DNA of 64,000 bases, taken from assembly GCF_001194135.2 (NCBI RefSeq), contig NC_068982.1, positions 128,650,906 to 128,714,905 of the forward strand. Direction: 5' to 3'. Below, in pieces: positions 1,716 through 64,000 of the stretch (its first letter is position 1; the number at the start of each line of letters is the position of its first letter). A program made the translations under genes and the position numbers. The notes under the pieces are model-generated. The model made no database searches, was not told the DNA's origin, and worked only from the letters and a program-made list of their open reading frames with translations. Source of the stretch: Octopus bimaculoides. Lineage: Eukaryota.

Positions 1716-2314
1716 TTACCTGCTTCGGTGGCCCTGACGTTGTTGGGTAAACTGACTAGAGGCATTTACTTGATGTTGCCTCTGTTGCACACGGTGCATG
1801 TCGTAGCTCCGTGATGCTTGGTGGCTTCGGGATTCTTGGTGTTCGACCTCTGACAACTGAGATTCACGGTATGAGGTTGCATAATCAGAATACCTTATTT
1901 GGTATACATCCATGGATGATGATGTGTCAGTTTCCAGATTTGGCATGTAATGATAATTTCGAACTTGTGTTACTGGATAAATATTCTCATAATATGGCTG
2001 ACGAGTGAGACGGAGAGATGTCTCATAATCAGCGAGATAAGATGATTCATGATCAGAGAATATTGTAGAATAATCATAATAATGTAGATTATGGGCATGA
2101 TGCTGACTTATATCCAGCTCATGTTGATGTGTTGTTTCATAAAGCTCTCTATAATATTGGCTGTCATGAGATTGGTCCAACTGTTCTTGAGTTGAGTGGT
2201 AGGGTAATGGTATTATAGGTCTATGTGTTTGCTGTTCTGATCCTTCATATGTGTAGTCCTGAGAAACCGATAACATTTGGTGACCACGGAACAATTGTAA
2301 AGCCATCTGGCTCT
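1716..2314 (-). CDS. Probable terminal exon: ~200-aa Tyr/His/Ser/Gln-rich low-complexity tail, stop TAA at 1716-1718
   Basis: Acceptor ttcttattcttcag|AG at 2315/2314 is in phase 1 and joins FN70 (..KASA-G) in frame: [12 protein letters not shown]...GHRSR*. 199 open codons, GC visibly above intron background. Confidence 0.72.
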
Positions 2315-2837: not shown

Positions 2838-5352
2838 TGTGTTGGTATGTGTTCTTTACTTTAGCCCTCAACTCTTGATGTAGTCACAGGGGAACCATCA
2901 TAAAATAGATCACGTCTTAAACATTTTACACTTGACAGAGCCCATCCTTTTCTGGTTTTGACTACAGACAATTTATTCCAGAAGGAAAGTGCATGAAGGA
3001 GGGAGGGAGAGAGAGAGAGGGGAAAGAGGAGGAAGAAAGAGAAGAGGAGGTTCTTTATGGACCCTGAAAGGATGAGTTTTTAAGGCTAATTTTGTGTATT
3101 TCAATAGGTAGATATCCCTGTTGTGTTAAGATGATGCCTGTCTCCTCTCCAAGAAAGATTAGCCATTGAGATTTCTGTGTTAGAAACTCTTCCACCTTTT
3201 GACAGGTTTTGTTTCTAAACCTGCTGGGTGCCCATGCATTCTTCTCACCAAGTAAACAAAGTGGGGATCAGTTTATCACCAGCCATCCAAATATGAGACA
3301 GGTTAAACTGGAAATAAGGTTTGAGAAATAAATTTTCCACACTGTTCAAATGAGAAGTTCAAATGTCATTCAACTGATAATGTAGCATATAGTGAGCATT
3401 ATAATTGCTTCAAACAAATATTATTCAAAGTATAACAGCATGGAAGATCTAATGGCATCATTTCTGCTAGCAGCTTAAAGATAAGGAAGCACTGGTGATG
3501 GTTTATGGTATAATAAACTGAAGTGTTATACTAATAGCAGAATAAGCATTGAAATAGTGGAAAAATAAACGAAAAAAAAATGCAGGTTAAAAAACTGTGA
3601 GGATTACATATATTCCAACAAAATAATGAAATCAAAATAGAACAAATAAAAGTGGTGGCTGAAGATTTGAAGCAATATTTGCTATTTGCAAGCAAGAGGC
3701 ATATCATAACTAAGCAATAAGAAAATGTGTAAATTAAAATAAACATGTGAAGGGCCTACCAAGAAAGAAGCCAACTAAACTGATTTAGAAGATTTAGAAC
3801 AGACAAATAGTGAAAGCTGAGGAAATAGAGGCTAAACCCTAAACAGTGAGTATTTGCATGGAATAATGGAATAAATTTAAATGATGATGAAGAATATTTT
3901 TGAGTTTTTAACAATGCATTGAAGCACCTTATAAAAGTTAGCATACATATTAAAATCTAAAGAAATGGCATGTTCAAAACAAGCAATATTCATTAAATAT
4001 ATATCAATTAATGAATGACAAAAGAGTAGCAGTTTGGCTCTGGGGAAGCTCTAAGATGTTGCATGAATACTCAGTGCTGGGTGCTTGTTTGCTTAAAACA
4101 GAAACAGCTTTAAGCTGATCAAAGTGATTAAATAACTCCTGTTCTTAAGTCATTCATTAATTGATATTATACATTGTACTGATATGACTGTTTACTACTG
4201 TAAAGCATGAGTATATTGAGTTCTAACAACTGCCTAAGCAGAATTATCATATATGTGTATAGATATCATCATCATCATCATTTAATGTCCATTTTCCATG
4301 CTATCATGGGTTGGAAGGTTTGACAGGAGCTGGCTAAGCAGAAGACTGCATCAGGCTTCACTGTCTGTTTTCGCAGGGTGTTTTATGGCTGGATGCCCTT
4401 CCTAGATCTAAAAATGAATATTAAACATGACCAAGTTACATTTTTTAATATTCTAAGTACATGGGAAATGAATGTAATTGCTGAAAAGGTGTAAATAGAA
4501 ATAAAATGCAAGCTTTTAGATTAATGAAATATAAATAAATGATTTACCTGCTGATGCTTTGGGAAGAACAATAATCTCTGTTTCCAATGGAAGACTAAGT
4601 CCAACTTCGTTAAAAGCCATGACTCTAAATTGGTAAGAATCTCCTGGTACAAGGCTTCTGATATAAGCATCAGTAGAATCAGCAGACACACGAGTACATT
4701 TTCGCCAGGCACCATTTCGTCTATCAAACCTTTCAACAATATAACCGAGTATACGAGCTCCACCATCCATAACAGAAGGTGACCATTCAATAGTAACATT
4801 GTCTTCATTAACATCTTTGACAATTATTGGGCCAATAGGAACTGATGGGCAACCTGGAGGGAAAACAAAAACGAAAATGGTATAAGCATCAGTTTCATTT
4901 TTACTCACTTGCAATATATGTTTAGTTTATTTTACTCAAGTATTAGTTTCATTCATTGGACCGTAGCCATTGGGGATGCACTGCTTTCAAGGATATTAAT
5001 CAATTATGTTAAACTCAGTATTTACACTAGCTTGGAATGAATTTATTTTATTGATTTCTTATTTTTAGATTACTAAGTTGCCCCTTGACATATAAGGACA
5101 TAATACCTTATTTGCATAAGTAAACAGAAACACAGCTATGAGTACTGGCAAACATACACACACGTGGCATAGCTGTGTGGTAAGAAACTTGCTTCCCAGC
5201 AACATGGTTCTGAGTTCAATCTGACTGCATGTTACTTTCGGCAAGTACCTTCTACTATAGCCTCAGGCTGACCAAAGCTTTGTGACTGGGTTTAGTAGGT
5301 GGAAATTGGAAGAAGCCTATTGTGTGTGTGTGTGTGTGTGTGTGTGTCTATG

Positions 5353-5439
<87 letters not shown>

Positions 5440-5444
5440 ATATG

Positions 5445-5478
<34 letters not shown>

Positions 5479-7863
5479 TACATGTGTATGTGTCTATGTG
5501 TATGCATGTTTGTGTCTGTCCCCAACCACTGTTTGACAACCAGTATTGTTTTGTTTATGTCCCAGTTACTTAGCAGTTCAACAATAAGTACTACACTTAA
5601 AAAAATAAGTACTGGGGTAAATTTGTTCAATTAAACTCTTCAAGGTGGTATCACAGCATGGCCACAGTCTAATGACAGAAACAAGAAAAAGATACATGAA
5701 CACACATGTGTGCACGCACACACACAAAAGTTTCTGCATGCACAGTCTCTGCATAAGACTTGCCCAAGGTTCAATACTATGGGATCAAACCTAAAGCCAC
5801 ACAGCTTCTTAATCACACAGCTATATCAAAGTTCTGAATATTTCTTTGAATGAAATTTGATAGGCTATCAATTGCAAGAATATTTAATTCTTTTTATTTG
5901 TCATTCATATAATTGCGAATTTAGTTATCATTTGCTTTCATATTTATATAAACCAATATCAAAATTTCAATTTCAATATAAAACTCATATTTATTGGTTC
6001 TTCAAAATCATGTATATCTTCCTCAAGCTTTATGTACTGCAGATTAGTTAACTACTGAAAATATTGAAAAAAATATATATACAATTGAAGAGAAAGATTC
6101 TATGTTAAACAAACCTGGGGCCTTCTTAGGTACAACTGTTTGAGGTAATTCTTTGTAGTCTCCCCAACCAGCAACATTCTTTGCTCTGATTCTGTAATAT
6201 GTTTCAACATTTTCATAGAGGTCTCGGACTGTAAATGAATGTACAGCAGCATCCAGTGTAACAATTTCAGTCCAGTCAGAACCTGCCCAACTCTGTTCAA
6301 TTGCATAGGCAGTAATTGGAGATCCACCATCATTAATTGGTTTTCTCCAGTAAAGGGAAACAGACCATTGAGTAATTTGTCCAATATCAAGATCTTCAGG
6401 TACTCCAGGAAGTTCTATTGACAAAAAGCAAAGTTATTATTAGAAATTTACTTTAATATTTTAATGGCATTTTTATATGAAGGCATTTTATTTAAGACTT
6501 TGAAAATTAGTTGAACATTTTAAATCTTTGAATTCTATTTTACTCAGGTGGTCCTTCCTAACCATTCGATGTTTAAAAAAATTGTATATTTTTATAAATA
6601 AATATTATTAAGAATTGTATACAAAATAATTGTTTCAAATATTTTGTGCATTGTTAAAGTATAACCAATTTATTGCAGATGAATTCTAACAATAAAATCG
6701 TATATGGACCCTCAAGGGTCATATGGACCATGGCTGAGAACTGCTGCTGAGAACTGTGTACTTCTACCAATGCTTATAATTGAAATATTTATAATCATGT
6801 TTCTTATAAAACTTTGTCAAATCTAAAATGTACAGACTGATGAAATATGTTTAATTTATGAATTACAAAATTAATTCTATCAAGGAGTTTAAATCCATTT
6901 AAATATTTTGAAAAAAAGGTTGTAAAATTTATAAATAAAAAAATAAAATCTTACCAATTGGTCTACGTGGCATAACTGGACAGGCAAGCCATACAGCATT
7001 ACCAATGCCTTCAACATTTTCTGCTGCCACTCTGAATCTATATTGACGGCCTTCTTGTAAACCATCAACAATATGCATTGTTTGTGTGGTTCTACCAATT
7101 GCTCTCCAATTTGTTGAACTACCATCACATCTTTCAATCACATAGCCATACAAGTCTGTACCACCAAAATCAAGAGGTCGTGTCCATTCCAGTGTGACAC
7201 TATCTTCAGTTACTTCTGTTACATGTAAGTTCTGTGGTGCTGAAGGTTTATCTGAAAATAGTTTTAAATTATCCAAATTACATATTCATGCATATAAATA
7301 TATTTGTGTGTGTGTGCGTATGGTGTTTAGAAGATATATTAAAACATAAATTTTGATGGAAGGAATTTTAGATCAGTTTAAAACAGGAGGCTTATATCAT
7401 AAATGCTAGAGCAGTTTCAGATAGATTGGTATGAAAAGGGTTAAAGAGCATACTTAAAGCACTGTGGTTTCTCCAAGTAGTCACCAATCTTGACCAAAAT
7501 CAGTGACCAGAGTTTTACAGTCATCACAAAAGCACCTGTGCCAGTGATGCATAAACAGCAACCACTACACTCTTACAGTGGTTGGCATTAGGAAGTGCAT
7601 CCAGCCATAGAAACCAAGCCAAAATCAGACTGAAACCTGGTGCAGCTCTGTGGTATACACACACAAACACATGTGAACATTGAACTGTGTTAAATAAATG
7701 AGCAATTAGTGCTTAATATATAAGAGAGTATATGGGTTTTATTGAAACTCAGTGTTTATCTGTCACCTCCATTTTCATGCCATTACAATCTTCAGATGGT
7801 TTTTACTCAAAGGTCACAGTGGCATGGAACTTGTTTCAATGAACTACATATATACATACATGT

Positions 7864-7907
<44 letters not shown>

Positions 7908-10900
7908 GTAATGTGGAGGAAGCTTGTTATGTAGAAATAACGATGTGACTTGCTCTTTTTAGCTATTAGTAAATAAATTTTTATTCATATATTAAAAAAT
8001 GGAAATAAACTAGAAATTTATAAAGTCAGATTTGTGAATGGATAAGTATATGAGGTATTGATGTCGATAAATAATATAAAAGAATAACTTACTATATGGG
8101 CTCTTTATTTTCACAGGGGACCTCAATTCCAAAGGCTCACTGTATCCAATTTCATTATGAGCATAAACTCTGAAATTGTAGCTATGGTTTTCAGCTAAAT
8201 CATGCAGAGTGCAATTTGTATCTTCTGCAGGAACATATGCAGCTCTAACCCAAAAGCCCCATATGAGATCTAATTTTTCTATCAGATATCCAACAATTGG
8301 ACAACCACCATCATCACTGGGACGTTTCCAGGATAGTGTCAAGGAATTACGAGTTATATCAGAAACATTAAGTGGTCCAAGTGGAATCGAAGGAGTTTCT
8401 GAAAATAGAAAATTTAATGAGATTTTAAAGAACAGTTTTTTTTTTATTTTAAAGAATAGTTTTAAAGAATAGATTTTAAAGAATAGGTGAAATACATAAT
8501 TGAAATATCTGATTTATTTTGACTGGGTAAATATTTTAATTTTTACTAAATTGCTGATTGTTTTATATCTTTTACAATTATTGTTTTTGATTTTACAAAT
8601 TCATCATGACCATAGGTCTGCACTTCAAAACTGAATTAAAATTAAGAAAAAAGTTAATTACATTTGTTAAAATTAGTTATGAATCTTTTATTATACCTGA
8701 TTGTCTGGTTGGAATTACTGGTTTTTCTGTAGGCAGCGGTCTGCTAGCACCAATGGCATTAACAGCACTCACTCTGAAATCATATTCCATTCCTTCAAAA
8801 AGACCACGTATGAGGCATGATGTATCTAGTGTTCTAGTAACCTCTAACCACTTATCTGAATCAGATTCTTTGATTTCCAGGATATAATACAATAATCTTG
8901 AACCACCATCATAATATGGAGGCAACCAGTCCATTGTAACAGAAGATTCTGTTACATGACAAGGCTGAAGAGAACCTGAAGGAATATCTGGTTTTTCTGA
9001 AAAGAGAAAAGAAAATCATATTTTCATTCGATGGAAACCAGAAATTTAAACAAACAATGAAAAACAATATCAAAATATTTAAATTAATCCTTCATTAGAA
9101 TTAATGTTTTTATCCAAAACATTCATATATTGCATGGAATTTCAAAAGAATTCTAAAAGAAAATTGTTATGAAACTTTACTATGATTAGCATAATATTTG
9201 TTGAGTGTTATACATACCAGGAGGCTTTTCACAGCTGATAATATCAGACTGTGCAAAAGGTCCTTCTCCTTCCTCATTCGTTGCTGAGATTCTGAATTGA
9301 TAATTTCGTCCTTCCAAAAGTTTCTTGAGAGTGTAATCTCTTAATCCTGGTTTCACATCAGTAACATGGACCCATATCATACGAGTCATATCTCGTTTCT
9401 CAATAGAATAGGCATTTATAGCTTTTCCTCCATCACTCTTTGGTGCAGACCATTTCAGAGTAACAAAGTCAGCACCGACTTCACTTACATCCAGATCTCG
9501 AGGAGCAGATGGTTTACCTGTAAGACAAGATGTCAAAGAATGTGCAATGTAAGCAACATAAAAGACTATAACAAAATAATGATATGAATACTATATACAT
9601 ATATTAATTCAAAAGCATATTATCAATGCAAAAAGATACTCTTTTGTTTCAGGCATTTGACGGTGGCCATGCTGGAGCACCACCTTTATTCGAACAAATT
9701 GACCCCCAGGACTTGTTCTTTGTAAGCCTAGTACTTATTCTATCGGTATCTTTTGTCAAACCACTAAGTTACAGGTACATAAACACACCAACATTGGTTG
9801 TCAAGCGAATGGTTAGGGGACAAACACAGACACACAAATATATACATACGATGGGCTTCTTTCAGTTTCCGTCTACCAAATCCACTCACAAGGCTTTGGT
9901 TGGCCTGAACCTATAGTAGAAGACACTTGCCCAAGGTGCCACACAGTGGGACTGAACCCAGAACCATGTGGTTGGTAAGCAAGCTACTTACCACACAGCC
10001 ACTCTTATGTATTTATAATAAATTATATTTATAGCTTTCCTTAAGCAAAATTACATCATCATTATCATCATTATTTTATGTCCACCTTTTGAAGCTGGCA
10101 TGGGCTGATTCAAACTGTTTATCAGCAAGAACTTACCGTAAGGACTTCTGACCAAGAATGGTTCGGTAGTCATCAATGGTTCAGACAGCCCAGCACTGTT
10201 TTCAGCAAACACTCGTGCATGATATTCACAGTCTTCAGAGAGGAAAGTTAATTCACACGATGTAGTATTTGCAGGAACTCTTTCACCCATTGCCCATGAA
10301 GACTTCCAAGTCTCTTTCTTTTCAGTGATATAACTTATGATTGGTGATCCACCATCATTTTCACTAAGCTTCCATGATATCACAGCCGATGATTTTGTTA
10401 TGTTATTTACAGATAATGGTCCAACAGGTCTTGATGGAGCATCTGAAAATACATGTACATAAATTTAAATACTTGCAAAAGTGTATTATAAAATATGAAG
10501 TATCATTTCAAATTAACATTACCAAAAATAAATCTAAGTTTTTAAAATTTAATTTAACTTAAAAAGATGCAGGAAGGTTGAGACTGATCTGCATTGATCA
10601 TTCCCAACCCCAGGACAAAAGTATCTGTTTTTGCTATACAAGGCTTATTTGCAGTTAAAGAAAGGTCTGGAACAAGCAAACTCAAAGACTATTTTGGTAA
10701 CACAATAGTGCAGTGCTAACAATGATAATTTTCAGAAATCTCCAAAAACCAAAACCTTAAAAATCTTAATCCTCCATAGGAGGATCATCTTTCTATGATT
10801 AAATTGAATTTTCTACTGCAAACGTCATTAGATATATAAAATCTAAATTATATGGCTCCCTTCAAAATTGTGAACTAACAAACTTATTATGTCTCCTATA

Positions 10901-11632
10901 TTATTATAGAATTTAACATGACATAATCAGAATTGGAAACTTATATTTTAAATACTGAAAATTTCTACAGAATATAACTTAAAATATAAGTACTTAACTT
11001 TAAATGAATAACAAAAAATAAAATAAATAAAATAAAAATGAATGTAGGAAATACAAAAGTAAGCTTACATATTTTCTTCTCAGGAGTAATAGCGTTTGGA
11101 ACAGGTACAATTTTACTTGAACCAACTTCGTTTTCAGCTGCAACTCCAAACAAGTAAAGTTTGTCACTGCGTAATTTTTTGGCAGTATACATATTGACAA
11201 AGGAGTCCACTGAGTCTATTTTTGCCCAGTTGCCATCTTGGCAGAGGTAAATGTTATAACATTTTATGCTGTCACCACCGTCAAATCTAGGTTCTCTCCA
11301 TTCAATAGTGCAATTATCGCATCCAACAGACACGATTTTAACACCTACTGGAGATGAAGGCAATTCTGGAAGAAGAAAAAGAAAGCAAGATACTCAGAAA
11401 TAATAATATACATATTCAAAACAAAATAGAAAACATTTCATTTGTTTATTATGCTTTTAATACATATTAGTTCTTAAGGACTCAGGAGAAGAAATGAAAT
11501 AAGAAAATGTTCTGTTTTATTTTCAACAGCTTTTGGAAATAAAAGATTCTACATTGATGATTCTATGGTTTTTAAGCTATTCCTTTAAGTGTATGATTAA
11601 AATATGTATGAATGTGTGTGTGTGTGTGTGCT

Positions 11633-11665
<33 letters not shown>

Positions 11666-14600: not shown

Positions 14601-16269
14601 CAGGGTAACTAGTTTTACTTACTAGCAACTTTCAATGGTACAATAGGCTCCTTTATTTCATTTGGTTTGCTGCGGCCTTCACTGTTGACAGCAAAGACTC
14701 GGAACTGATATTCTTTTCCTTCAACCAATTTTTCTGCAATGAATCTTGTATGCAATGTACCAGTTTCTCCAACTTGAAGCCATGAAAGGTGAGAAAGGTC
14801 TCGCCGTTCAATAACATAACCAGTAATAGGTTTACCTCCATCAAACTGTGGAGTATCCCATTCTAAGGTTACTGATTTACTAGTTATATCTTCAATACGA
14901 AGATGTGCTGGAGGATCAGGTGGAGCTAAAATTAGAAATAGATTCATCAATTAAATAAAATATCTAATGAAAGAATCAATTTTTATGTTATTTTAAAACA
15001 ATCTTTTTGGTGGTATATGAATAAATTAAAATCATGTAAAAATAACTATGGCCACAGTCTAATGACTAAAACAAGTGAAAGATAAAATATGATTGTAAGT
15101 ATTTTATATTAGAGTAATAACTTAGTTATAAGTAGAGTTATGAGCCTAATCTAAATATATAATGCAATACATCATGAATAATTCAGTCCATCATTTATGG
15201 GTTGTAAATTTAATAACTTGATACTCTCACATTGCTTAGCAAACTAATATTTCATATTTTTGTGTCATGGCCCAAATATTCTACCTCTTTTATGTTCAAA
15301 CTGGCCAGATCCACTCTGTCACACATATCCTACATCGTCATTCTAAAAGTAAACAATCACATAATTGATATCTCAAAGCTAGAAATTATGCACCATTAAT
15401 TTATAACTATGTCAATATATGAGCATTACATTTGACAGAGTAATATGAATGATAAAGGGTTAAGATGGCAGAAAATAAATTATGTAAATAGTATAAAAAA
15501 TAGTTATTTTATATAAAAATAAAAATAACGGCTTGGAATTTTTTCTAGTTAGATTTTTGACAATGAATACTTACCAAATGGACTTAGGATCTTGATAAGT
15601 TTCTTGGCTTCTAATGGAGATGATACGCCAACACTGTTTTCAGCAATAATTCGGAATGTATACTCTTGACTTTCTTGAAGTTTTCTAATAACATACTCAA
15701 AGGTCTTTGGTGAGACACAATCAACATATTGCCAACTTGTTCTCCATGATTCTCTTTGTTCAATAATGTATGACAAAATTGGAGAACCACCATCATCTTT
15801 ACTAGCTTTCCATTTAAGCCCAACAGAATTACGCTTGACATTTTCAATCACAAGCGGTCCTTCAGGTGCTGTAGGTACCTCTGCAATAAAATATATTGAT
15901 TATGAAATACATTTTCAAGCAATTAAATTTAGTTTTTAATTTGTCTACATTTTAGTAATTTATCAACTAAATCTTTAATGTTGAAGCTATAAATAAACGT
16001 AATAGATATCATATAGTTTATAACTATCAAGAACATTTTTCATATTCATTGTGTAATACCTTGAAAAATGCCCACACATATATGACAAAAAAGAAAAATT
16101 ACTATTTTATCGTAAAATCAATACTGACCACAACCAATTAGAAATTATTGATAAACATTGAAATGTTTACTACTTTGGGTTACAACTGAAATTTATCATT
16201 AGATTATACTATTCAAAACTAAAATGTAATGATATTCTGTAAAACAGCTTTGGCACAATTAAAGTCATC

Positions 16270-16311
<42 letters not shown>

Positions 16312-57400: not shown

Positions 57401-60400
57401 CACTTACTTTTCTCTCTGGAAGGTATCGTAGATTCTGATGTCTCCAAGGGTGGACTTTCTCCTTCCTCATTGACAGCAATCACACGGAAGTAATATTCTG
57501 TACCCTCGACTAAACCTGTAACTCTGGCAACAGTAGATTTGGCATCAACTTCTTCTGCTTTGTTCCAAGACATGCGTGCAGCAGATCTTACTTCAACAAT
57601 ATATTTAGTGATTGGAGTGCCTCCATCACTGTCAGGAGCTCTCCATTCAAGATCAACATAGTCATAAGAGACCTTGGTAACTTCAAGGGGCCCTTTAGGA
57701 CGAGATGGTACACCTAAAAACAAATAAAGAAAGATATTAAGAGTTGTTTTGAAATTTTATTCAAAAATATGAATCTGCAATACAACAACATTCATTTTTC
57801 CAATATTACAAATATTGAGGTGTTCAATAAAAAAAAAAATCATTTTAACAGCCCGTCTCAGTCTTTTACCCTATGCATGTATCATTTGGTAAATTATATT
57901 AAATAATCAGTAAAAATTAATATTTTTATCAATAAAAAGAAACTGATTTATAGTCATAATTTCTTCTGATTATATACTCATTTCTAAACAAGAACCATAC
58001 AATAACAGGAAGCTAACAAAGAAAACAAAACTAAAGAATATATAAAAAATGATTATCAATGAGAAGCAAAATATATGACTTACTGAATGAGCTCTTAGCC
58101 ATTGTTGAAGCATCAGTCTGTAAGGGATCACTGTGACCAATTTTATTGATTGCTGTAACTCTGAAGTCATATTCACAGTTCTGTCTCAGATCTTCAACAC
58201 GGTAGTTGGTCACTGAGGGTGCTACCTTAGCCACATTGTTCCAGTATTGTCTATTAGCTTCTTTCTTCTCAATAATGTAACCAGTGAGAGGACTACCTCC
58301 ATCATCTTCTGGAGCTTTCCAGGAAATGGAAATAGATGTTTTCTCAATATCATAGGTTTTCAGAGGACCAATTGGTTTCGATGGTTTTTCTAAAAATACA
58401 AAACAGTACACAATGATAGAATAATGTCTCTCAAGTTTTACTCACATCAAATACCAAGAAAGTTTAAGATCTATAGACAAAAATTACAGAGATATCAAAT
58501 ATCTTACCAAGAGATNNNNNNNNNNNNNNNNNNNNNNNNNNNNNNNNNNNNNNNNNNNNNNNNNNNNNNNNNNNNNNNNNNNNNNNNNNNNNNNNNNNNN
58601 NNNNNNNNNNNNNNNNNNNNNNNNNNNNNNNNNNNNNNNNNNNNNNNNNNNNNNNNNNNNNNNNNNNNNNNNNNNNNNNNNNNNNNNNNNNNNNNNNNNN
58701 NNNNNNNNNNNNNNNNNNNNNNNNNNNNNNNNNNNNNNNNNNNNNNNNNNNNNNNNNNNNNNNNNNNNNNNNNNNNNNNNNNNNNNNNNNNNNNNNNNNN
58801 NNNNNNNNNNNNNNNNNNNNNNNNNNNNNNNNNNNNNNNNNNNNNNNNNNNNNNNNNNNNNNNNNNNNNNNNNNNNNNNNNNNNNNNNNNNNNNNNNNNN
58901 NNNNNNNNNNNNNNNNNNNNNNNNNNNNNNNNNNNNNNNNNNNNNNNNNNNNNNNNNNNNNNNNNNNNNNNNNNNNNNNNNNNNNNNNNNNNNNNNNNNN
59001 NNNNNNNNNNNNNNNNNNNNNNNNNNNNNNNNNNNNNNNNNNNNNNNNNNNNNNNNNNNNNNNNNNNNNNTGAAAATCTGAACACAAAATTCTAATGAGA
59101 AATAGATTATTACTCACCAATCTTCCTCACTGGTTTTGTGACATCAGTAGATTCAAGTGGTTTACTTTGTCCTTCAGCATTAACAGCAAAGACACGGAAA
59201 TGGTAACTTGTGTCTTCTGTAAGATTTGGTACTGTAAATGTGGTAGTTTTCTCATTAACAGTGCCTGCTTTAGTCCAGAAGGTTCTGGAATCTACTCTGT
59301 GTTCAATAATGTATCCAGTTATTGGTGTACCACCATCATTGGCAGATGGTTTCCAGCTCAAGTCAGCAGAATTATTGGTGACATTTGTGATCTCCAATGG
59401 ACCAACTGGTGCAGATGGCACATCTAAGAAATAAATAGAAAATATATATAATATAACACTCAGTATATTGCTGTTATTGATAAATATCAATCAAAATTCA
59501 GTTGGCTCATTATTTTGCCTTTTCAATGAAAATACTTTTGTTATTTCAATTATTTTAATGTAACATTTTGTTTTACTATTAAAAGAAAATTTCAAGAAAT
59601 ACATTCAATATACAATAACTAAACTTACCAAATGGACTTCTGGCCATTGTAGCATCCCTAGTTTCCAAAGGTTCACTCTCTCCAATTTTGTTTTCAGCAA
59701 TCACTCTGAAGTGATACATGGTTCTTTCTTGGAGATCCCTAACACAATAATCTGTGATGTCAGCACGAACTTTCTCAACCTTTGACCAATATCGAGCAGA
59801 CTCGGGACGTTTTTCTATGATGTATCCAATAATTGGAGAACCACCATCATCAGATGGTGCTTTCCATTTGATGCTGATAGATTTACGCTGGACATCGGTA
59901 ACAGTAAGAGGACCAATTGGTTTGGATGGAATCACTGAAAATAAATTTATAATTTATATAAACATCTTTCTTTTAACACTTCTGTCTACTTTTAACCAGA
60001 GTATAATTTCAAATATACATGATATTCTAATTTCAAGTATAAGTTTATTTTTCTGCAAATATTCAAGTGAAAATACTTACAAAGTCCCTTCTTTGTAGTG
60101 ACTGGTTTCGATGTTTCAGTAGCTTCACCTTTTCCAAGTTTGTTTTCAGCACATACAGAGAAATAGTAGTCCATATCTTCTTCAAGTCTAGTGGCTTTAC
60201 AGAATGTATCATAAGCTCCGACAGTTGCCAGTTTAGTCCAGTTTCCTAATGTTTGTGGAGATATTTCAACATGGTATTTAGTAATTGGTGTTCCTCCATC
60301 TGATTTTGGTTGATTCCACTCAAGTTCAACAAAGTCTTCACCAACTCTGCTAGCTCGGACATTGACAGGTGGTCCTGGTAGAGCTAGAAATGAAATAATA

Positions 60401-63400
60401 CATATAAGTTCCATGCAAGCAAAAGAATAAAAATGATATTGTAGAAACATTTTTTGTTGTGGTATTAAAAATGTGTTTCATACTTTTTACTCTGTACATT
60501 TATGTATGACGAAGTAGATGCAAACTGCCACCATGAAGAGTCTTTGTTCATCTCCGTAATCAATGAGAATATTACAAACTGACAGGTTTTTTTGCAACTT
60601 GCTATGCTGATTTCAAATTCTATTGAAAACAAGGATTCCTTCATCTGTTGATAGATGTAATTAATAATCTGTTCTACTAAAGGCACAAGGCCTGAAATTT
60701 TGGAGGAGGGGACTAGTCAATTACATCAACTTCAGTATTTCACTGGTACTTAGTTCATTGACCCCAAAGGGGTGAAAGGCAAAATAAACCTTGACAGAAT
60801 TTTAACCCAGAACATAAAGACAAACAAAATGCTGTGCTGCATCTTGCCTGGCATGCTAACAATTTTGTCAGCTTGCTGCCTCAGATATTATTAATAATGT
60901 TAAGCAATTGCTACAATAGAGAGAAGTAAATTATCAATAGAAGAAAATACTTTCAAATTTTATGAAGAATACATTGCTTGATAATGAATATATTTAAATA
61001 TTTCATCATTGTTTTAACATTCACATTTTGATGCTTGCATAAGACAGAATTAGTTGAGATATATTTTCTATGGCTAGATGTTCTGCCTTTTGCCAACTCT
61101 CACTTATTTCAAACATAATATTTCCCCATCATTGGATGAGGAGTGTTCAGTTCAAGAATATAACCTCTTTAGTTTAAAGTTGAGATAAATACAAACCATT
61201 TTTAGTAACTTATCCTGATTTGACAGTGTCATGATTGCGTGTATGTTCTTGTGGAGATAAAATGAACTATTGTCACATACAGGACAGGAGGCTCCTGACT
61301 GAGATACCACACAGTGGTACTCGATCTCCAGAAGTAAACTTCTTAACTGCATAGCCATACCAGTAACTATTCTATGAAATCTATATTATTTAAATACAAT
61401 TTAGTATATGTGTGTGTGGGGGGGTGTATGTACTTAAAATAAAATCATGAGAAAAATAGTGAATATTTTAAAGTTATTCTGAATCACTAATACAAATCGT
61501 GTATAACTTTTATCGTGTATATTATCAATATTTAAATATTGTTTCCATGATAGCAATATAAAACAAAGTGTATACACAACATTGTGAAATTTTACAAAAG
61601 AAGATATGTTACTGATTAAAAACACTAAAATCCTTATCAAATAAAACTTACTGAGATCTCATCTCACATTCGTTTTGTAATAAGTACAATTTTAATGAAT
61701 GAATCATCAACTATGTATAATTTAAATCCTTACCCAAATCCCTCATTGGTTTTGTAACATCAGTTGATTCCAGAGGATGGCTGTATCCTTCAGCATTGAC
61801 AGCAATAATTCTGAAGTAATATTCTGTTCCTTCCATCAAATTGCTGCATGTATATGTTGTCTGTTTTGGGTCCACTGTTGCTGCCTTTGACCATGTGGTT
61901 CTGGTAGCTGTTCTGTATTCTACCAAATATCCTGTAATGGAAGTTCCACCATCATTTTCAGATGGTTTCCATTCAAGATCAGCTGAGTTGTAGGTGACAT
62001 TTGAGATAACCAGTGGGCCAACAGGTGGAGATGGCACATCTGAAAATAGACAAATGAAAATAGGAGAAATAAAATATATGAAAAGTGATAAGCGTTACTT
62101 TAGATTAAAATGGAGAATAAGCTGAATAGTATACAATTATGTGAAATGTCAATTCATTGGTTTATTTTGTTTTTGCTTACTAAATTTTTTTAACATACCT
62201 ATACAGTATGATGAAAGTTATAAATAGAGTGAAGAACCTATTACTTTCAAAGTTTTTATAAGTTCATTGTAATGAGGCAAAAGAGAAGATGAAAATTGAA
62301 AAAGATCACTTATATTGGCCATATTTAGAACAATATTCTTATTGTCAAAGCAGATTTAATAGAATTTAAGGTAAATGTTATTTTAATCAGCAAAATGTGT
62401 TTTGGGGAAAAAAATGTATAATTCATTATAATGAAATGCAAGTGGAATATAATTTGTTTGAAATAAATTTATATTTGCTGTTCACTACTCTAAAATACTC
62501 TTATACTTTTTTTTTAAAGCTGTCATGTTTCAATTACTCCTATTTTACCATGCTTTAAAATAGCTTAGCCTCAATTTGAACTTCATATTTAAGCAATACC
62601 TTTTCCTTCTTTCTCATGAAAAAGGAAAATGAAACTAAAAGTAATGCCAAAACTGATCTATCCTTTAATATATCAATTTAATAAAATTGATATATTAAAG
62701 GAGAGAGAGGAATGTTCAGTCCAAGAATATAATCTCTTTAGTTCAAAGTTTGTGTAAATATAAATCATCTTCAGTAACTTATCCTAATTTGATAGTGCCA
62801 TATTTGTATGTATGTTCTTGTGGAGATAAAATGAGCTATCTTGAGATAATGTGATCAGATGTCCCTTGGTATTTCTGCTCAATTTCTGTTAACTACATCT
62901 TACATAGTCTGATAAGATTTCAGGTAGTCTCTTATGGTTAAATTATTTTAATCTATACTTGACTTCAATTCACATTTAATTCAACATTGCTGAAATTTTA
63001 CCAGAGTGTTTAATCCACCAAACATATTTATCTTATTTTCAAGTTTTTTATGCTGTGTATTTTCAATGCTTTTTTGGTTGTGTGCTCTTCTTATCCTCCA
63101 CTGTTCAATATTTTCAATTTATCCATTGTATTTAATTGCTTTCTTATCTGTTCTCTTTTGGTAACATCAGAGCCTATTTTCTATGTTAAGGGTGCTTTCC
63201 TACATTAATTCTATCTACATCAGATTTTCAGTAACATATTCTGAATCCTCTCATAAGTTCCTTATTTTCATGTTCCTCTTTCTTATTTATAATTCAATAC
63301 AATGATACAGTAGCAAATTTATGGGACAACTAGCATGGTTACATTAATTATTTTGCATGCCCTATTTCAATTTCTGAGTATTGCTGAATAGTGGAAGCTA

Positions 63401-64000
63401 TAGTCACATAGAGAACCGAACAATATCTACTGACTCTATTTTTCCTTTGGCTTGTAATTTCTGGCAATCTTCTTCCATCTGGATGATATGATGGACTCTA
63501 AGATAGATCGGAGGGCCTAAAGATAGATATTTTATTCCAGGGTTAAACCACTGTCAAGTTGGAGAGGAAGGTAAGGGGGGAAAGAGAGGTGTCACAATCC
63601 AGTAAATTTACTGAATAGTAAGTGACAGTAATCTTCACTACACAATATTTTGTAAGCACAAAAGATTTTATTTTATTTATATATCAACAGTAAAATATCA
63701 ACACCATACTCACAACAAAAATAGAACTAAAATATTTAAAAAGAAACTTACCAAATGGACTACGAGCTAAAGTAGCTGCGTCTGTCTCAAGAGGTGGACT
63801 CTGTCCAATCTTGTTGACTGCAATAACTCTGAAGAGATATTCATTCTTCTCATAAAGGCCTTTAACACACATTTCATATGTTGAAGCATCCACTTGATCT
63901 ACCCTACTCCATATATGGGCTTTAGTATGCTTCTTCTCAACATTGTAAGCAATAATTGGTGAACCACCATCATCCTTTGGTGCCTTCCATTTAATACTGA
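1716..64000 (-). CDS. Giant FN3-only titin/twitchin-family protein gene (3' part; 70 FN3 exons + terminal exon; 5' end lies beyond the window)
   Basis: 68 complete or partial exons translate in one phase-1 frame to sarcomeric-type FN3 domains (PxxP-GPL...W.pP..DGGspI..Y.iE...W...L.e...Y.FRV.A.N..G.s.pl). GT-AG sites were read at each boundary. No Ig, kinase, signal peptide or TM segment is seen. Orthology cannot be assigned from sequence alone. Confidence 0.93.
2535..2750 (+). mobile_element. Mariner-derived MITE
   Basis: TIRs gctgaaaagttcctggctt / aagccaggaacttttcagc, TA context. The internal remnant translates [17 protein letters not shown], like the mariner transposase C-terminus. Confidence 0.8.
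2797..2833. repeat. (GA)n microsatellite next to N-gap 2782-2795
   Basis: Direct. Confidence 0.9.
4262..4405 (-). mobile_element. (GAT)n-tailed retroposon 3' fragment
   Basis: (cat)n-ttaatgtccattttccatgct...ggctggatgcccttcct; same family recurs at 7533, 28126, 29455, 31585, 44905. Confidence 0.7.
4548..4853 (-). CDS. FN70 exon (last FN3)
   Basis: 306 nt; [22 protein letters not shown]. Confidence 0.95.
5163..5693 (+). mobile_element. tRNA-derived SINE with internal (TG)n/(TA)n expansion
   Basis: Head ggcatagctgtgtggtaagaaacttgcttccc...gagttcaatc (A/B-box-like), tail cagcatggccacagtctaatgacagaaacaag; microsatellite 5321-5480. Confidence 0.75.
6115..6414 (-). CDS. FN69 exon (SR6 position 6)
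   Basis: 300 nt; [23 protein letters not shown]. Confidence 0.95.
6955..7251 (-). CDS. FN68 exon (SR6-5)
   Basis: 297 nt; [22 protein letters not shown]. Confidence 0.95.
7533..7650 (+). mobile_element. (GAT)n-tailed retroposon family fragment
   Basis: cagtggttggcattaggaagtgcatccagccatagaaacc...cctggtgcagc; opposite orientation to the 4262 copy. Confidence 0.65.
8093..8398 (-). CDS. FN67 exon (SR6-4)
   Basis: 306 nt; [22 protein letters not shown]. Confidence 0.95.
8697..8996 (-). CDS. FN66 exon (SR6-3)
   Basis: 300 nt; [20 protein letters not shown]. Confidence 0.95.
9218..9517 (-). CDS. FN65 exon (SR6-2)
   Basis: 300 nt; [22 protein letters not shown]. Confidence 0.95.
9640..10003 (-). 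mobile_element. Near-complete tRNA-derived SINE
   Basis: Reverse complement of the 5163/48255 family from head (ttaccacacagccactc) to tail (ggccatgctggagcaccacc, tttgtttca). Confidence 0.85.
10137..10442 (-). CDS. FN64 exon (SR6-1)
   Basis: 306 nt; [23 protein letters not shown]. Confidence 0.95.
11069..11365 (-). CDS. FN63 exon (SR6-6)
   Basis: 297 nt; [25 protein letters not shown]. Confidence 0.95.
11676..12510 (-). mobile_element. Degraded RTE-clade LINE reverse-transcriptase fragment
   Basis: Frameshifted pieces [24 protein letters not shown] (YxDD), [40 protein letters not shown]. Confidence 0.88.
12659..12964 (-). CDS. FN62 exon (SR6-5)
   Basis: 306 nt; [21 protein letters not shown]. 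Confidence 0.95.
13338..13640 (-). CDS. FN61 exon (SR6-4; absent from ORF track)
   Basis: 303 nt, hand-translated open: [31 protein letters not shown]. Confidence 0.95.
14171..14464 (-). CDS. FN60 exon (SR6-3)
   Basis: 294 nt; [20 protein letters not shown]. Confidence 0.95.
14623..14925 (-). CDS. FN59 exon (SR6-2)
   Basis: 303 nt; [22 protein letters not shown]. Confidence 0.95.
15268..15463 (-). mobile_element. Partial piggyBac-like (TTAA) MITE
   Basis: Reverse-complement homologue of 42138-42365, ending aaagggttaa. Confidence 0.7.
15575..15880 (-). CDS. FN58 exon (SR6-1)
   Basis: 306 nt; [23 protein letters not shown]. Confidence 0.95.
16380..16682 (-). CDS. FN57 exon (SR6-6)
   Basis: 303 nt; [25 protein letters not shown]. 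Confidence 0.95.
17020..17325 (-). CDS. FN56 exon (SR6-5)
   Basis: 306 nt; [21 protein letters not shown]. Confidence 0.95.
17999..18298 (-). CDS. FN55 exon (SR6-4)
   Basis: 300 nt; [23 protein letters not shown]. Confidence 0.95.
18900..19199 (-). CDS. FN54 exon (SR6-3)
   Basis: 300 nt; [20 protein letters not shown]. Confidence 0.95.
19354..19659 (-). CDS. FN53 exon (SR6-2)
   Basis: 306 nt; [21 protein letters not shown]. Confidence 0.95.
19876..20181 (-). CDS. FN52 exon (SR6-1)
   Basis: 306 nt; [23 protein letters not shown]. Confidence 0.95.
20487..20789 (-). CDS. FN51 exon (SR6-6)
   Basis: 303 nt; [25 protein letters not shown]. Confidence 0.95.
21207..21512 (-). CDS. FN50 exon (SR6-5)
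   Basis: 306 nt; [21 protein letters not shown]. Confidence 0.95.
21801..21910. repeat. 40-bp minisatellite, ~2.7 copies, in a G/T-skewed tract (~21605-21960)
   Basis: Units start 21801, 21841, 21881: (t/c)gtgttattt.att(a/g)g....tgattgtat. Confidence 0.8.
22220..22522 (-). CDS. FN49 exon (SR6-4)
   Basis: 303 nt; [21 protein letters not shown]. Confidence 0.95.
22982..23281 (-). CDS. FN48 exon (SR6-3)
   Basis: 300 nt; [21 protein letters not shown]. Confidence 0.95.
24069..24374 (-). CDS. FN47 exon (SR6-2)
   Basis: 306 nt; [21 protein letters not shown]. Confidence 0.95.
25410..25712 (-). CDS. FN46 exon (SR6-1; first of the 6-mer zone)
   Basis: 303 nt; [23 protein letters not shown]. Confidence 0.95.
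26021..26323 (-). CDS. FN45 exon (SR9-6-like)
   Basis: 303 nt; [26 protein letters not shown]. Confidence 0.95.
26514..26819 (-). CDS. FN44 exon (SR9-5-like, diverged)
   Basis: 306 nt; [21 protein letters not shown]. Confidence 0.95.
26935..27240 (-). CDS. FN43 exon (SR9-4)
   Basis: 306 nt; [23 protein letters not shown]. Confidence 0.95.
27486..27788 (-). CDS. FN42 exon (SR9-3)
   Basis: 303 nt; [33 protein letters not shown]. Confidence 0.95.
28126..28615 (-). mobile_element. (GAT)n-tailed retroposon carrying a 66-bp tandem array
   Basis: (cat)n tail at 28126, family core to ~28290, then ~5 units of 66 bp (atg anchors at 28358, 28424, 28491, 28557). Confidence 0.75.
28667..28972 (-). CDS. 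FN41 exon (SR9-2)
   Basis: 306 nt; [21 protein letters not shown]. Confidence 0.95.
29455..29690 (+). mobile_element. (GAT)n-tailed retroposon fragment
   Basis: ctctgtaaagtggttggtgtcaggcaacccatccag...ccatgccagcatagaaaac followed by (gat)n. Confidence 0.7.
29696..29917 (+). mobile_element. Complete tRNA-derived SINE
   Basis: A-box-like tggcagaatcgttagc, B-box-like gagttcaaatt, core cactggggtcgatgtaatcgactt, tail gggtaataaagaaat; CpGs retained. Confidence 0.85.
30110..30415 (-). CDS. FN40 exon (SR9-1; absent from ORF track)
   Basis: 306 nt, hand-translated open: [23 protein letters not shown]. Confidence 0.95.
30726..31028 (-). CDS. FN39 exon (SR9-9)
   Basis: 303 nt; [26 protein letters not shown]; AAG acceptor, gttagt donor. 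Confidence 0.93.
31585..31710 (+). mobile_element. (GAT)n-tailed retroposon fragment
   Basis: cactgtaaagtggttggcattaagaagagcatccagccatagaaatc. Confidence 0.65.
32106..32411 (-). CDS. FN38 exon (SR9-8)
   Basis: 306 nt; [21 protein letters not shown]. Confidence 0.95.
32787..33092 (-). CDS. FN37 exon (SR9-7)
   Basis: 306 nt; [23 protein letters not shown]. Confidence 0.95.
33729..34031 (-). CDS. FN36 exon (SR9-6; absent from ORF track)
   Basis: 303 nt, open: [36 protein letters not shown]. Confidence 0.95.
34489..34794 (-). CDS. FN35 exon (SR9-5; absent from ORF track)
   Basis: 306 nt, open: [22 protein letters not shown]. Confidence 0.95.
35497..35802 (-). CDS. FN34 exon (SR9-4)
   Basis: 306 nt; [23 protein letters not shown]. 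Confidence 0.95.
35908..36305 (+). mobile_element. Degenerate SINE
   Basis: ggcatggctgagtagttaag...caggttcaatacc...ttgggcaagtgt head; ccatgccagtatggac tail; boundaries approximate. Confidence 0.55.
36335..36637 (-). CDS. FN33 exon (SR9-3)
   Basis: 303 nt; [33 protein letters not shown]. Confidence 0.95.
36765..37070 (-). CDS. FN32 exon (SR9-2)
   Basis: 306 nt; [21 protein letters not shown]. Confidence 0.95.
37288..37590 (-). CDS. FN31 exon (SR9-1; absent from ORF track)
   Basis: 303 nt; [24 protein letters not shown]. Confidence 0.95.
38377..38679 (-). CDS. FN30 exon (SR9-9)
   Basis: 303 nt; [26 protein letters not shown]. Confidence 0.95.
38860..39165 (-). CDS. FN29 exon (SR9-8)
   Basis: 306 nt; [21 protein letters not shown]. 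Confidence 0.95.
39346..39651 (-). CDS. FN28 exon (SR9-7)
   Basis: 306 nt; [23 protein letters not shown]. Confidence 0.95.
40050..40410 (-). mobile_element. Degraded Tc1/mariner (mariner-type) transposase fragment
   Basis: [36 protein letters not shown]...[14 protein letters not shown] resembles the mariner ISYG.C..IL...L.M....AK.VPRLLT.EQK...NDP.F..RIIT segment (by eye). Confidence 0.65.
40478..40780 (-). CDS. FN27 exon (SR9-6)
   Basis: 303 nt; [36 protein letters not shown]. Confidence 0.95.
41127..41570. repeat. Interspersed repeat ending in a fold-back inverted repeat (arms 41325-41441 / 41468-41570)
   Basis: Core agaggtgaattattcaaaccccaaagaattcctctcaa matches its inverted copy at 37/38; arms end tgagtagcccat / atgggctactca; 26-nt loop. 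Confidence 0.85.
42138..42365 (+). mobile_element. Complete piggyBac-like MITE
   Basis: TTAA|CCCTTTAGCATT ... AATACTAAAGGG|TTAA: TTAA target duplication and TIRs; ends 16 bp from the FN26 donor. Confidence 0.85.
42382..42687 (-). CDS. FN26 exon (SR9-5)
   Basis: 306 nt; [22 protein letters not shown]. Confidence 0.95.
42946..43332 (-). mobile_element. Young full-length tRNA-derived SINE with 13-bp TSD
   Basis: TSD agaggttgaaagt at 42933-42945 and 43333-43345; head (rc) tgtggaggcgcaatggcccagtggttagggc...ggtttcaattccc; CpG-rich; (CAA)-type tail. Confidence 0.9.
43477..43782 (-). CDS. FN25 exon (SR9-4)
   Basis: 306 nt; [23 protein letters not shown]. Confidence 0.95.
43811..44022 (-). mobile_element. 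SINE (29696 family) with (TAT)n tail just upstream of the FN25 acceptor
   Basis: tgattctgccagcatgcc head (rc), ccccagtattcaactgatacttattttattgaccctgaaagg core. Confidence 0.75.
44308..44610 (-). CDS. FN24 exon (SR9-3)
   Basis: 303 nt; [33 protein letters not shown]. Confidence 0.95.
44905..45120 (-). mobile_element. (GAT)n-tailed retroposon fragment
   Basis: catcatttaatgtctgttgtccatgatggcatgggttggatgg...tagatacctttcctaatgacaaccac. Confidence 0.65.
45167..45472 (-). CDS. FN23 exon (SR9-2)
   Basis: 306 nt; [21 protein letters not shown]. Confidence 0.95.
46638..46943 (-). CDS. FN22 exon (SR9-1)
   Basis: 306 nt; [23 protein letters not shown]. Confidence 0.95.
47327..47629 (-). CDS. FN21 exon (SR9-9)
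   Basis: 303 nt; [26 protein letters not shown]. Confidence 0.95.
47760..48065 (-). CDS. FN20 exon (SR9-8)
   Basis: 306 nt; [21 protein letters not shown]. Confidence 0.95.
48255..48630 (+). mobile_element. tRNA-derived SINE with internal (GT)n
   Basis: ggcatggctgtatatttaagaaggttgcttccc...gggttcag...caccttgggcaagtgtc head; ggtggtgccccagcatggccac tail. Confidence 0.75.
48991..49296 (-). CDS. FN19 exon (SR9-7)
   Basis: 306 nt; [23 protein letters not shown]. Confidence 0.95.
50320..50622 (-). CDS. FN18 exon (SR9-6)
   Basis: 303 nt; [36 protein letters not shown]. Confidence 0.95.
50832..51137 (-). CDS. FN17 exon (SR9-5)
   Basis: 306 nt; [22 protein letters not shown]. Confidence 0.95.
51433..51738 (-). 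CDS. FN16 exon (SR9-4)
   Basis: 306 nt; [23 protein letters not shown]. Confidence 0.95.
51859..51952 (-). CDS. FN15 exon (SR9-3), mostly hidden in N-gap 51863-51952
   Basis: Only the 3' stub CTT G|gtaagat is visible; position predicted by the 9-mer register; the gap is too short for a 303-nt exon. Confidence 0.7.
52058..52363 (-). CDS. FN14 exon (SR9-2)
   Basis: 306 nt; [21 protein letters not shown]; 305/306 identical to FN5. Confidence 0.95.
53192..53497 (-). CDS. FN13 exon (SR9-1)
   Basis: 306 nt; [23 protein letters not shown]. Confidence 0.95.
53997..54320 (+). mobile_element. Possible degraded Penelope-like GIY-YIG endonuclease relic
   Basis: One frame with 2 stops: [17 protein letters not shown]...E*IH...SVTKHL...[21 protein letters not shown], resembling VIY..C..C...YIG...R..EH...KEA.HI.K..P..N; by eye only. 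Confidence 0.42.
54763..55065 (-). CDS. FN12 exon (SR9-9; absent from ORF track)
   Basis: 303 nt; [26 protein letters not shown]. Confidence 0.95.
55260..55562 (-). CDS. FN11 exon (SR9-8)
   Basis: 303 nt; [21 protein letters not shown]. Confidence 0.95.
56065..56146. repeat. Direct-inverted-direct micro-duplication with 14-bp perfect hairpin
   Basis: ttgtcctaatatca-atg-tgatattaggacaa (56081-56111) between 34-bp direct copies at 56065 and 56113. Confidence 0.85.
56498..56803 (-). CDS. FN10 exon (SR9-7)
   Basis: 306 nt; [23 protein letters not shown]. Confidence 0.95.
56980..57282 (-). CDS. FN9 exon (SR9-6)
   Basis: 303 nt; [36 protein letters not shown]. Confidence 0.95.
57408..57713 (-). 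CDS. FN8 exon (SR9-5)
   Basis: 306 nt; [22 protein letters not shown]. Confidence 0.95.
58084..58389 (-). CDS. FN7 exon (SR9-4)
   Basis: 306 nt; [23 protein letters not shown]. Confidence 0.95.
58508..58810 (-). CDS. FN6 exon (SR9-3), mostly hidden in N-gap 58516-59070 (upper end estimated)
   Basis: Visible stub A TCT CTT G|gtaagat (..SL-G), like the ..PL-G ends of FN24/FN42; register prediction. Confidence 0.72.
59118..59423 (-). CDS. FN5 exon (SR9-2)
   Basis: 306 nt; [21 protein letters not shown]. Confidence 0.95.
59629..59934 (-). CDS. FN4 exon (SR9-1)
   Basis: 306 nt; [23 protein letters not shown]. Confidence 0.95.
60081..60383 (-). CDS. FN3 exon (SR9-9)
   Basis: 303 nt; [26 protein letters not shown]. 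Confidence 0.95.
60670..60881 (-). mobile_element. Degenerate SINE (29696 family)
   Basis: ggcacaaggcctgaaattttggaggagggg...cactggtactta...attgaccccaaagg...catgctaacaattttgtcagc. Confidence 0.7.
61734..62039 (-). CDS. FN2 exon (SR9-8)
   Basis: 306 nt; [21 protein letters not shown]. Confidence 0.95.
63752..64000 (-). CDS. FN1 exon (SR9-7), truncated by window end
   Basis: ..[31 protein letters not shown]; donor gtaagt at 63751. Confidence 0.95.

Follow-up and report, generated by a model that had tools for sequence, protein, structure and literature searches.

A giant array of fibronectin type III domains in triplet and nine-domain order in Octopus bimaculoides, most likely the C-terminal part of a titin-family protein

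This study concerns a stretch of 64,000 nucleotides from Octopus bimaculoides (assembly GCF_001194135.2, contig NC_068982.1, positions 128,650,906 to 128,714,905 of the forward strand), here called the window and numbered from its first letter, and the giant array of fibronectin type III (FN3) domains encoded on it. The window is AT-rich (about 32% G+C) and contains six runs of N, all of them intronic, and its coding signal of interest lies entirely on the minus strand. A hidden Markov model (HMM) trained on 12 FN3 domains taken from the window itself recognized exactly 68 domains, every one of them on the minus strand, and all 68 (d1 to d68 in the direction of transcription) scored above the threshold for Pfam fn3 (PF00041), with a best E-value of 4e-19. 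Each domain corresponds to one exon of 294–306 nt, with a polypyrimidine-AG acceptor on one side and a GT(A/G)AG-type donor on the other, and all 68 exons are symmetric, starting and ending in phase 1. Spliced in order, they yield 6,873 codons (20.6 kb) with zero stops, and the domains follow the consensus W..P..DGGSPIT.YIIE...W...Y.FRV.A.N..G.S.P. The frame is continued in phase by a terminal coding exon (2314–1716, minus strand), which adds a tail of 199 aa that is rich in glutamine, serine, tyrosine and histidine (S 13.6%, Q 13.1%, Y 10.6%, H 8.5%), matches no Pfam family and ends with a TAA codon at 1716, the very position at which a preliminary description of this locus had its feature begin. 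Both the long uninterrupted run of FN3 exons and the low-complexity tail reported there were recovered. The total model comprises 7,072 aa and is truncated at its 5′ side within d1 by the window edge at 64000; because the gene is cut there, the count of 68 to 70 FN3 domains is a lower bound. Most likely, the window holds the 3′ 62 kb of one giant minus-strand gene that encodes the C-terminal part, at least 7,072 aa, of a molluscan titin-family modular filament protein. We infer that all exons are joined in one transcript, and the 7,072-aa product is to be read as a maximal model.

The FN3 domains are not interchangeable but fall into three types that follow each other in the repeating order A-B-C. 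Domains of type A start with P..GP[LIV] in 22 of 23 cases and end with SP[F/Y/H] in 21 of 23, type B domains share the start (20 of 23) and never have the end, and type C domains lack both. The preliminary description had assigned a PxGPL start and a kSPF-like end to every third domain, which holds true for the combination of the two features, the start as such being found in type B as well. Superimposed on the triplets is a second, longer period. When one placeholder is set at each of two gaps discussed below, the mean pairwise identity between domains rises from a background of about 34% to 46% at lags of 3, 6 and 12 domains, 63% at a lag of 9 and 58% at a lag of 18 (calculated for d2–d45), while d46–d68 show a weak period of 3 alone. 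Domains d1–d46 all belong to one or another of nine classes, which occur in the order A3 B3 C3, followed by five copies of a nine-domain super-repeat, A1B1C1-A2B2C2-A3B3C3. A long-range super-repeat as known from the titin family is therefore present, and it is composed of nine FN3 domains as opposed to the seven- and eleven-domain Ig/FN3 repeats of titin.

On the minus strand, and read from high to low positions, the array opens with a partial super-repeat at 60081–63998, consisting of d1 (A3, 63998–63752, cut by the window end), d2 (B3, 62039–61734) and d3 (C3, 60383–60081). Super-repeat 1 (54763–59934) has the layout d4 A1, d5 B1, an absent C1 with a gap at 58516–59070 in its place, d6 A2, d7 B2, d8 C2, d9 A3, d10 B3 and d11 C3 (d4 59934–59629, d5 59423–59118, d6 58389–58084, d7 57713–57408, d8 57282–56980, d9 56803–56498, d10 55562–55260, d11 55065–54763). 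Super-repeat 2 (47327–53497) is built in the same way, with d12 A1, d13 B1, an absent C1 with a gap at 51863–51952, and d14 A2 to d19 C3 (d12 53497–53192, d13 52363–52058, d14 51738–51433, d15 51137–50832, d16 50622–50320, d17 49296–48991, d18 48065–47760, d19 47629–47327). Super-repeat 3 (38377–46943, d20–d28) is complete from A1 to C3 (d20 46943–46638, d21 45472–45167, d22 44610–44308, d23 43782–43477, d24 42687–42382, d25 40780–40478, d26 39651–39346, d27 39165–38860, d28 38679–38377), as is super-repeat 4 (30726–37590, d29–d37: d29 37590–37288, d30 37070–36765, d31 36637–36335, d32 35802–35497, d33 34794–34489, d34 34031–33729, d35 33092–32787, d36 32411–32106, d37 31028–30726). Super-repeat 5 (22982–30415, d38–d46) is more diverged than the other copies (d38 30415–30110, d39 28972–28667, d40 27788–27486, d41 27240–26935, d42 26819–26514, d43 26323–26021, d44 25712–25410, d45 24374–24069, d46 23281–22982). 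It is followed by a unique part (4548–22522) with 22 FN3 exons, d47–d68, in which the triplet order persists and the nine-domain repeat does not (d47 22522–22220, d48 21512–21207, d49 20789–20487, d50 20181–19876, d51 19659–19354, d52 19199–18900, d53 18298–17999, d54 17325–17020, d55 16682–16380, d56 15880–15575, d57 14925–14623, d58 14464–14171, d59 13640–13338, d60 12964–12659, d61 11365–11069, d62 10442–10137, d63 9517–9218, d64 8996–8697, d65 8398–8093, d66 7251–6955, d67 6414–6115, d68 4853–4548). The tail exon at 1716–2314 closes the gene.

For most pairs of copies nine domains apart, the ratio of nonsynonymous to synonymous substitution rates (dN/dS) lies between 0.06 and 0.5, and dS is mostly above 1. 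Purifying selection thus acts on each of the super-repeat copies, which are old. The block d1–d7 is different: its exons share 74–99.7% of their nucleotides with d9–d15 (99.7% for d5/d13, 98% for d1/d9). This block is young or gene-converted, and super-repeat 1 is the youngest copy. Identity is concentrated in the B1 and A2 exons and the adjacent intron (51381–52381 versus 58033–59441, 94–99.7%), while the remaining parts of the blocks are 61–92% identical, a distribution that points to gene conversion on a local scale, or to partial duplication in the very recent past, centered on the two C1-position gaps. Such figures raise the question of whether the domain count is inflated because the segments at 51.4–57.8 kb and 58.0–64.0 kb are a false duplication or a haplotig. 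The near-identity of d5/d13 and d1/d9 would fit this explanation, as would the fact that both gaps are located at homologous points and have flanks that are 94–98% identical to each other. We nevertheless consider it very unlikely, given that other exon pairs within the blocks reach only 61–92% and most of the intron sequence is unalignable: the identity is too low and too uneven for haplotigs, and it fits a real duplication with local gene conversion.

In addition to the 68 visible exons, two FN3 domains had been placed in gaps by the preliminary description. Both gaps, 58516–59070 between d5 (B1) and d6 (A2) and 51863–51952 between d13 (B1) and d14 (A2), are located exactly where the nine-domain order skips C1 and a C1-type exon is expected, whereas the domains themselves are not visible. 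The assembled introns measure 728 and 319 nt, respectively, and the B1-to-A2 interval including the C1 exon amounts to 963–1,427 nt in the older copies, as calculated from the exon coordinates. Missing exons had to be judged by domain order and by orthologs, as uniform phase 1-1 borders make the reading frame uninformative. On these grounds, each of the two gaps quite probably hides one C1 exon, which would measure about 303 nt and resemble d22, d31 and d40 (P.PPI.FR.TK.G.DF..LEW.PP...GG..IT.Y.I.KR).

Apart from FN3, no domain of the kinds expected in a titin-like protein was encountered. Pfam returned no match to I-set, Ig_3, V-set or Pkinase among the 68 domains, and the other minus-strand open stretches of at least 45 aa (118 stretches, 7.1 kb of protein) yielded a partial RVT_1 match but neither immunoglobulin (Ig) domains nor Pkinase. 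An Ig HMM trained on 80 domains from titin- and twitchin-like proteins, which readily detects the Ig exons of the limpet Lottia gigantea (see below), found nothing at E ≤ 1 on either strand of the window. Interleaved I-set Ig domains are thus not found within the visible C-terminal 7,072 aa, and an MLCK-like kinase near the C-terminus is likewise missing from a gene whose C-terminus lies inside the window (stop at 1716). To our knowledge, every titin-family kinase is located at the C-terminal end. The data support a protein that has no C-terminal kinase and is Ig-free for at least 7,000 aa, and they agree with the earlier statement that the interval contains no Ig or kinase exon.

The fold of the domains is settled, at the level of sequence matches, by Pfam and the PDB, and the affinities of the domains point to the intracellular sarcomeric type. 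In the PDB, the domains match best to titin chains of the cardiac thick filament (8g4l, 8q6t), to titin tandems (8bnq, 3lpw) and to MyBP-C, and the top of a search through 1.84 billion representative proteins is occupied by vertebrate titin A-band pieces and by twitchin/projectin-like proteins. Domains of types A and B are 44–51% identical to FN3 domains that follow an Ig domain in the twitchin-like protein P0004, where these domains begin with P..GPL and finish with K(S/N)PF as in the window; the C domains have no clear affinity in the relatives compared. The assignment to titin/twitchin-type FN3 made in the preliminary description is therefore confirmed. Since FN3 arrays are common in extracellular proteins, and since the N-terminus, which may carry a signal peptide, lies beyond the window, we also considered an adhesion, matrix or receptor-type protein of the cell surface. 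Chains of contactins, NCAM2 and receptor protein tyrosine phosphatases (RPTPs) do match, with PDB scores clearly below those of titin and MyBP-C, twitchin-like proteins also being clearly closer. EGF, LamG, transmembrane and phosphatase parts are absent from the C-terminus, N-x-S/T sites number 33 over the 6,873 aa, which by our rough estimate does not exceed chance, and the Ig domains encoded upstream in Lottia are of the obscurin/titin type. We give an extracellular location very little credence.

Among metazoan models, the nearest FN3-only runs are those of Lottia LOTGIDRAFT_141638 (10 FN3), the "twitchin-like" protein XP_013419362.1 of Lingula (14 FN3, then an Ig) and a "titin-like" protein of Saccoglossus (18 FN3, then Ig-Fn-Fn units). 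Longer FN3-only runs of 20–37 domains in the representative set were rejected as precedents; they come from surface proteins of bacteria, recognizable by signal peptides, cell-wall anchors or sequence rich in Ala/Thr. Metagenome sequences P0058, P0061 and P0131/P0192 are intronless arrays of 11–23 FN3 domains, most of which carry a W..P..DGG..I..Y motif; one metagenome array stems from a metagenome-assembled genome of Proteobacteria, JGI gives one cluster member the label "titin", and P0058 and P0061 resemble surface proteins of bacteria.

A search of a database of 5.8 billion proteins, whose entries extend up to about 1,100 aa only, returned no protein of the same species and a single close ortholog, the spliced 786-aa fragment P0001, which is 55% identical. 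It is collinear with d63–d68 (58–73% identity per domain) with no exon skipped, and its tail is 30% identical to that of the window and shares the motif YDY..SYL(A/S)DYE.SL. Downstream of 1716, no additional terminal exon was detected that would match the final 17 residues of P0001. The ortholog bears on the question of whether a protein with 68 or more FN3 domains exists at all, or whether the exons form a reservoir of cassettes or belong to several shorter genes. Symmetric phase 1-1 exons throughout are reminiscent of the alternatively spliced I-band of titin, and public annotations split the orthologs into many models. Split models are usual for giant repetitive genes, however, and a mere reservoir does not sit well with purifying selection on every copy and with position-specific conservation. 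In P0001, six domains in a row and the tail are spliced together with none left out, and no features of an internal start, stop or terminal exon were seen within the array. A cassette reservoir or a set of shorter genes thus appears unlikely to us.

The most informative relative is a genomic locus of Lottia gigantea (KB200919.1:182007–240050). It contains at least 42 consecutive FN3 exons on one strand, with one domain per exon, phase 1-1 borders and A-B-C triplets, and its 3′ end lies inside an N gap of more than 7 kb. Exons 17–28 of this array match d55–d66 in order, with 43–64% identity, and by class the identity to the window reaches up to 62% for A, 54–55% for B and 41% for C. A KSPF/KSPY end is present at every third exon through most of the array, and the period of 3 is retained. 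The array is thus conserved in other molluscs, among which the preliminary description had proposed to search for FN3-only giants.

It is the region upstream of the Lottia array that changes the picture of the whole protein. On the same strand and with the same exon spacing, two Ig exons precede an FN3 exon, Ig exons separate two Fn-Fn-Fn blocks, and the Ig exons beyond these number at least 12. The preliminary description had taken the absence of Ig domains as a property of the entire protein, and a complete protein consisting of FN3 domains and the tail, with neither Ig domains nor kinase, would agree with the 62 kb and 68 exons of the window; a 3.2-kb exon-free stretch between the Ig-containing zone of Lottia and its FN3-only array could even hide an alternative promoter. 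The octopus gene is cut at 64000, however, and the first exon of the FN3-only array in Lottia is an internal one that begins at a phase-1 acceptor and lacks a start codon, the last FN3 exon upstream has a phase-1 donor, and the public model LOTGIDRAFT_141663 bridges the two zones. A similar order, Ig-run models followed by a same-strand 5,613-aa model with Ig and FN3 domains, exists in Pinctada imbricata (VSWD01000014.1:33451513–33484328), which we regard as a candidate counterpart only. With Ig exons upstream on the same strand, phase-compatible exons and a bridging model in Lottia, the whole protein is probably not Ig-free, and by analogy the complete protein in O. bimaculoides most likely has Ig domains N-terminal of the visible part; a protein made of FN3 domains and tail alone is distinctly unlikely. 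Derivation of the array by loss of Ig domains, as had been proposed, is not shown by the data either. To see whether the A-B-C triplet could be an Ig-Fn-Fn-Fn unit that has lost its Ig, FN3 domains from the Ig-containing Lottia zone were compared with the three types; they do not fall into classes A, B and C, so this derivation is not demonstrated. What remains of the preliminary description as a whole is its observation, an FN3-only, kinase-less region that is real, conserved and unusual, whereas neither an Ig-free protein nor an origin by Ig loss is established.

The doubt that it had expressed about automatic annotation was justified. Relatives are labelled "hypothetical protein", "titin-like", "twitchin-like" or "M-protein-like", and the Lottia locus, apparently one giant gene, is split into at least five "hypothetical protein" models. 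Further FN3-only models of the titin type (LOTGIDRAFT_141610, Littorina V1264_012463 and a "titin-like" protein of Haliotis, all automatic names) are fragments. In Littorina saxatilis (JBAMIC010001020.1:53191–76676), an FN3-only fragment termed "M-protein, striated muscle-like", with nine FN3 exons in 9 kb, adjoins a retrotransposon (integrase/reverse transcriptase) model. In Pinctada, a gene for a rhodopsin-type G protein-coupled receptor is located on the opposite strand between the Ig-run model and the 5,613-aa model, probably within an intron of a single giant gene.

The four remaining gaps give no indication of missing exons. The gap at 27986–27995 (d39/d40 intron) and that at 42008–42065 (d24/d25 intron) leave the nine-class order unbroken, for the gap at 11666–11675 (d60/d61 intron) Lottia has one exon between the equivalents of d60 and d62, just as the window does, and for the gap at 2782–2795 in the 2.2-kb intron between d68 and the tail the spliced P0001 exhibits the same junction (...LPKNPIE/SQSALQ versus ...LPKASAE/SQMALQ). 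Long microsatellites with (CT)n, (TA)n or (CA)n units are located at 2796–2860, 5295–5630, 27839–28060 and 48224–48469; several adjoin gaps, and those that abut gaps probably caused them. The introns also contain mobile or repetitive sequences. On the minus strand at 11600–12559, the d60/d61 intron carries the remnant of a reverse transcriptase of the type found in long interspersed nuclear elements (LINEs), with broken open stretches and a partial RVT_1 match, and a (TA)n run inside it adjoins the gap at 11666–11675. A G+C-richer element of about 160 nt is present in tandem copies at 28115–28650, with related copies in other introns (4265–4404, 29473–29668 and 44905–45065); it is probably a short interspersed nuclear element (SINE) or a satellite, and the tandem repeat at 28.1–28.65 kb gives rise to a spurious plus-strand open reading frame of 151 aa.

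Taking the evidence together, we lean towards a reading in which the window encodes the C-terminal, FN3-only rod of a kinase-less giant of the titin family, with Ig domains upstream by analogy with Lottia. This rod consists exclusively of sarcomeric-type FN3 domains, each on one symmetric phase 1-1 exon and arranged in A-B-C triplets. Tandem duplication of exon blocks would have amplified the triplets to at least five copies of the nine-domain super-repeat in this lineage, the protein ends in a short, presumably disordered Q/S/Y/H-rich tail, and its unseen 5′ part would comprise Ig-Fn-Fn-Fn units and a tandem Ig run. The rod may run alongside a periodic partner, for which the myosin/paramyosin thick filament is the most likely candidate, and serve as a scaffold or ruler like the 11-domain C-zone repeat of titin. 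Docking on a periodic partner is suggested because sequence has been conserved separately at all nine positions while synonymous divergence is saturated, and position-specific conservation is the same argument as that used for the C-zone of titin; the thick filament is the best candidate because of the sequence affinities, from which muscle expression and filament binding would also be expected.

Several points weigh against this reading. Any subset of the exons could be skipped without loss of frame, all of them being phase 1-1. The lag-9 signal is absent from the Lottia array, so the super-repeat is not a conserved requirement; judged by the sequences compared, it is specific to the lineage of the window. 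Nine FN3 domains of about 4 nm each, our own estimate, add up to about 36 nm and not to the 43-nm myosin repeat; that 36 nm is half of the 72.5-nm paramyosin repeat we regard as numerology, not as evidence. Finally, the 5′ end of the gene lies outside the window, and its upstream Ig domains are deduced from other molluscs only.

When textbooks illustrate a protein ruler that fits the lattice of the thick filament, they turn to the A-band super-repeat of titin; invertebrate thick filaments are much longer and have a paramyosin core. Should the reading be true, a conserved molluscan giant with an FN3-only region of the thick-filament type would constitute an independent natural experiment on the requirements for a filament ruler, and it would suggest that Ig domains and kinase are dispensable for such a region. 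It is conceivable, though for the time being rather doubtful, that molluscs possess a second kind of titin which unites an Ig-rich spring and a kinase-less, FN3-only, A-band-like ruler in one polypeptide, and that the three-by-three super-repeat was acquired independently of the eleven-domain repeat of vertebrates, i.e. by convergence. Gene size and architecture are invisible in databases, as annotation splits the gene into many "hypothetical" or "titin-like" models. Our literature searches retrieved no description of an FN3-only molluscan giant and, as far as these searches reach, neither the FN3-only three-by-three super-repeat nor an array of this size has been described.

How does the array compare with known members of the titin family? 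With the A-band C-zone of titin it shares FN3 domains of the sarcomeric type and a super-repeat of long range whose individual positions remain distinct from each other. In titin, however, Ig domains are set at fixed positions (Ig-Fn-Fn-Ig-Fn-Fn-Fn-Ig-Fn-Fn-Fn), whereas here nine FN3 domains follow each other without any Ig, and where titin has a kinase and Ig domains close to its C-terminus, the window gene has its 199-aa tail only. Twitchin and projectin (UNC-22, bent, molluscan twitchin) resemble it in their three-domain periodicity, and the A and B domains are close to the post-Ig FN3 domains of the twitchin-like P0004. Unlike in the array, every third domain of twitchin is an Ig, a position that is occupied here by the divergent FN3 of type C, and twitchin terminates with a kinase followed by Ig domains, neither of which is present in the window gene.

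Drosophila Sallimus is a titin-family protein without a C-terminal kinase, in which an N-terminal tandem Ig run is followed by FN3 domains toward the C-terminus. The Sallimus/TTN-1 type shares with the window gene the lack of a C-terminal kinase. The order of an Ig run followed by FN3 is documented in Lottia by at least 12 Ig exons and Ig-Fn-Fn-Fn units; in O. bimaculoides the corresponding 5′ part is located beyond the window. By analogy, the window would most likely represent the A-band-like C-terminal part of a second, Sallimus-type (kinase-less) molluscan titin. Sallimus has only a handful of FN3 domains, as opposed to at least 68 with a three-by-three super-repeat here. Molluscan "Sallimus/Titin" homologs, a category into which the window gene would fit, have been listed for C. 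gigas (XP_034304301.1) and M. yessoensis (XP_021365920.1) (PMC12063666, Table S1), and proteomes of scallop adductor muscle contain several unigenes annotated as "titin" besides twitchin, none of them linked to the window gene (PMC5963113). Further parallels are the titin-type FN3-only runs in molluscan and brachiopod models, with at least 42 FN3 domains and no nine-domain repeat in Lottia, and a run of 14 that gives way to an Ig in Lingula.

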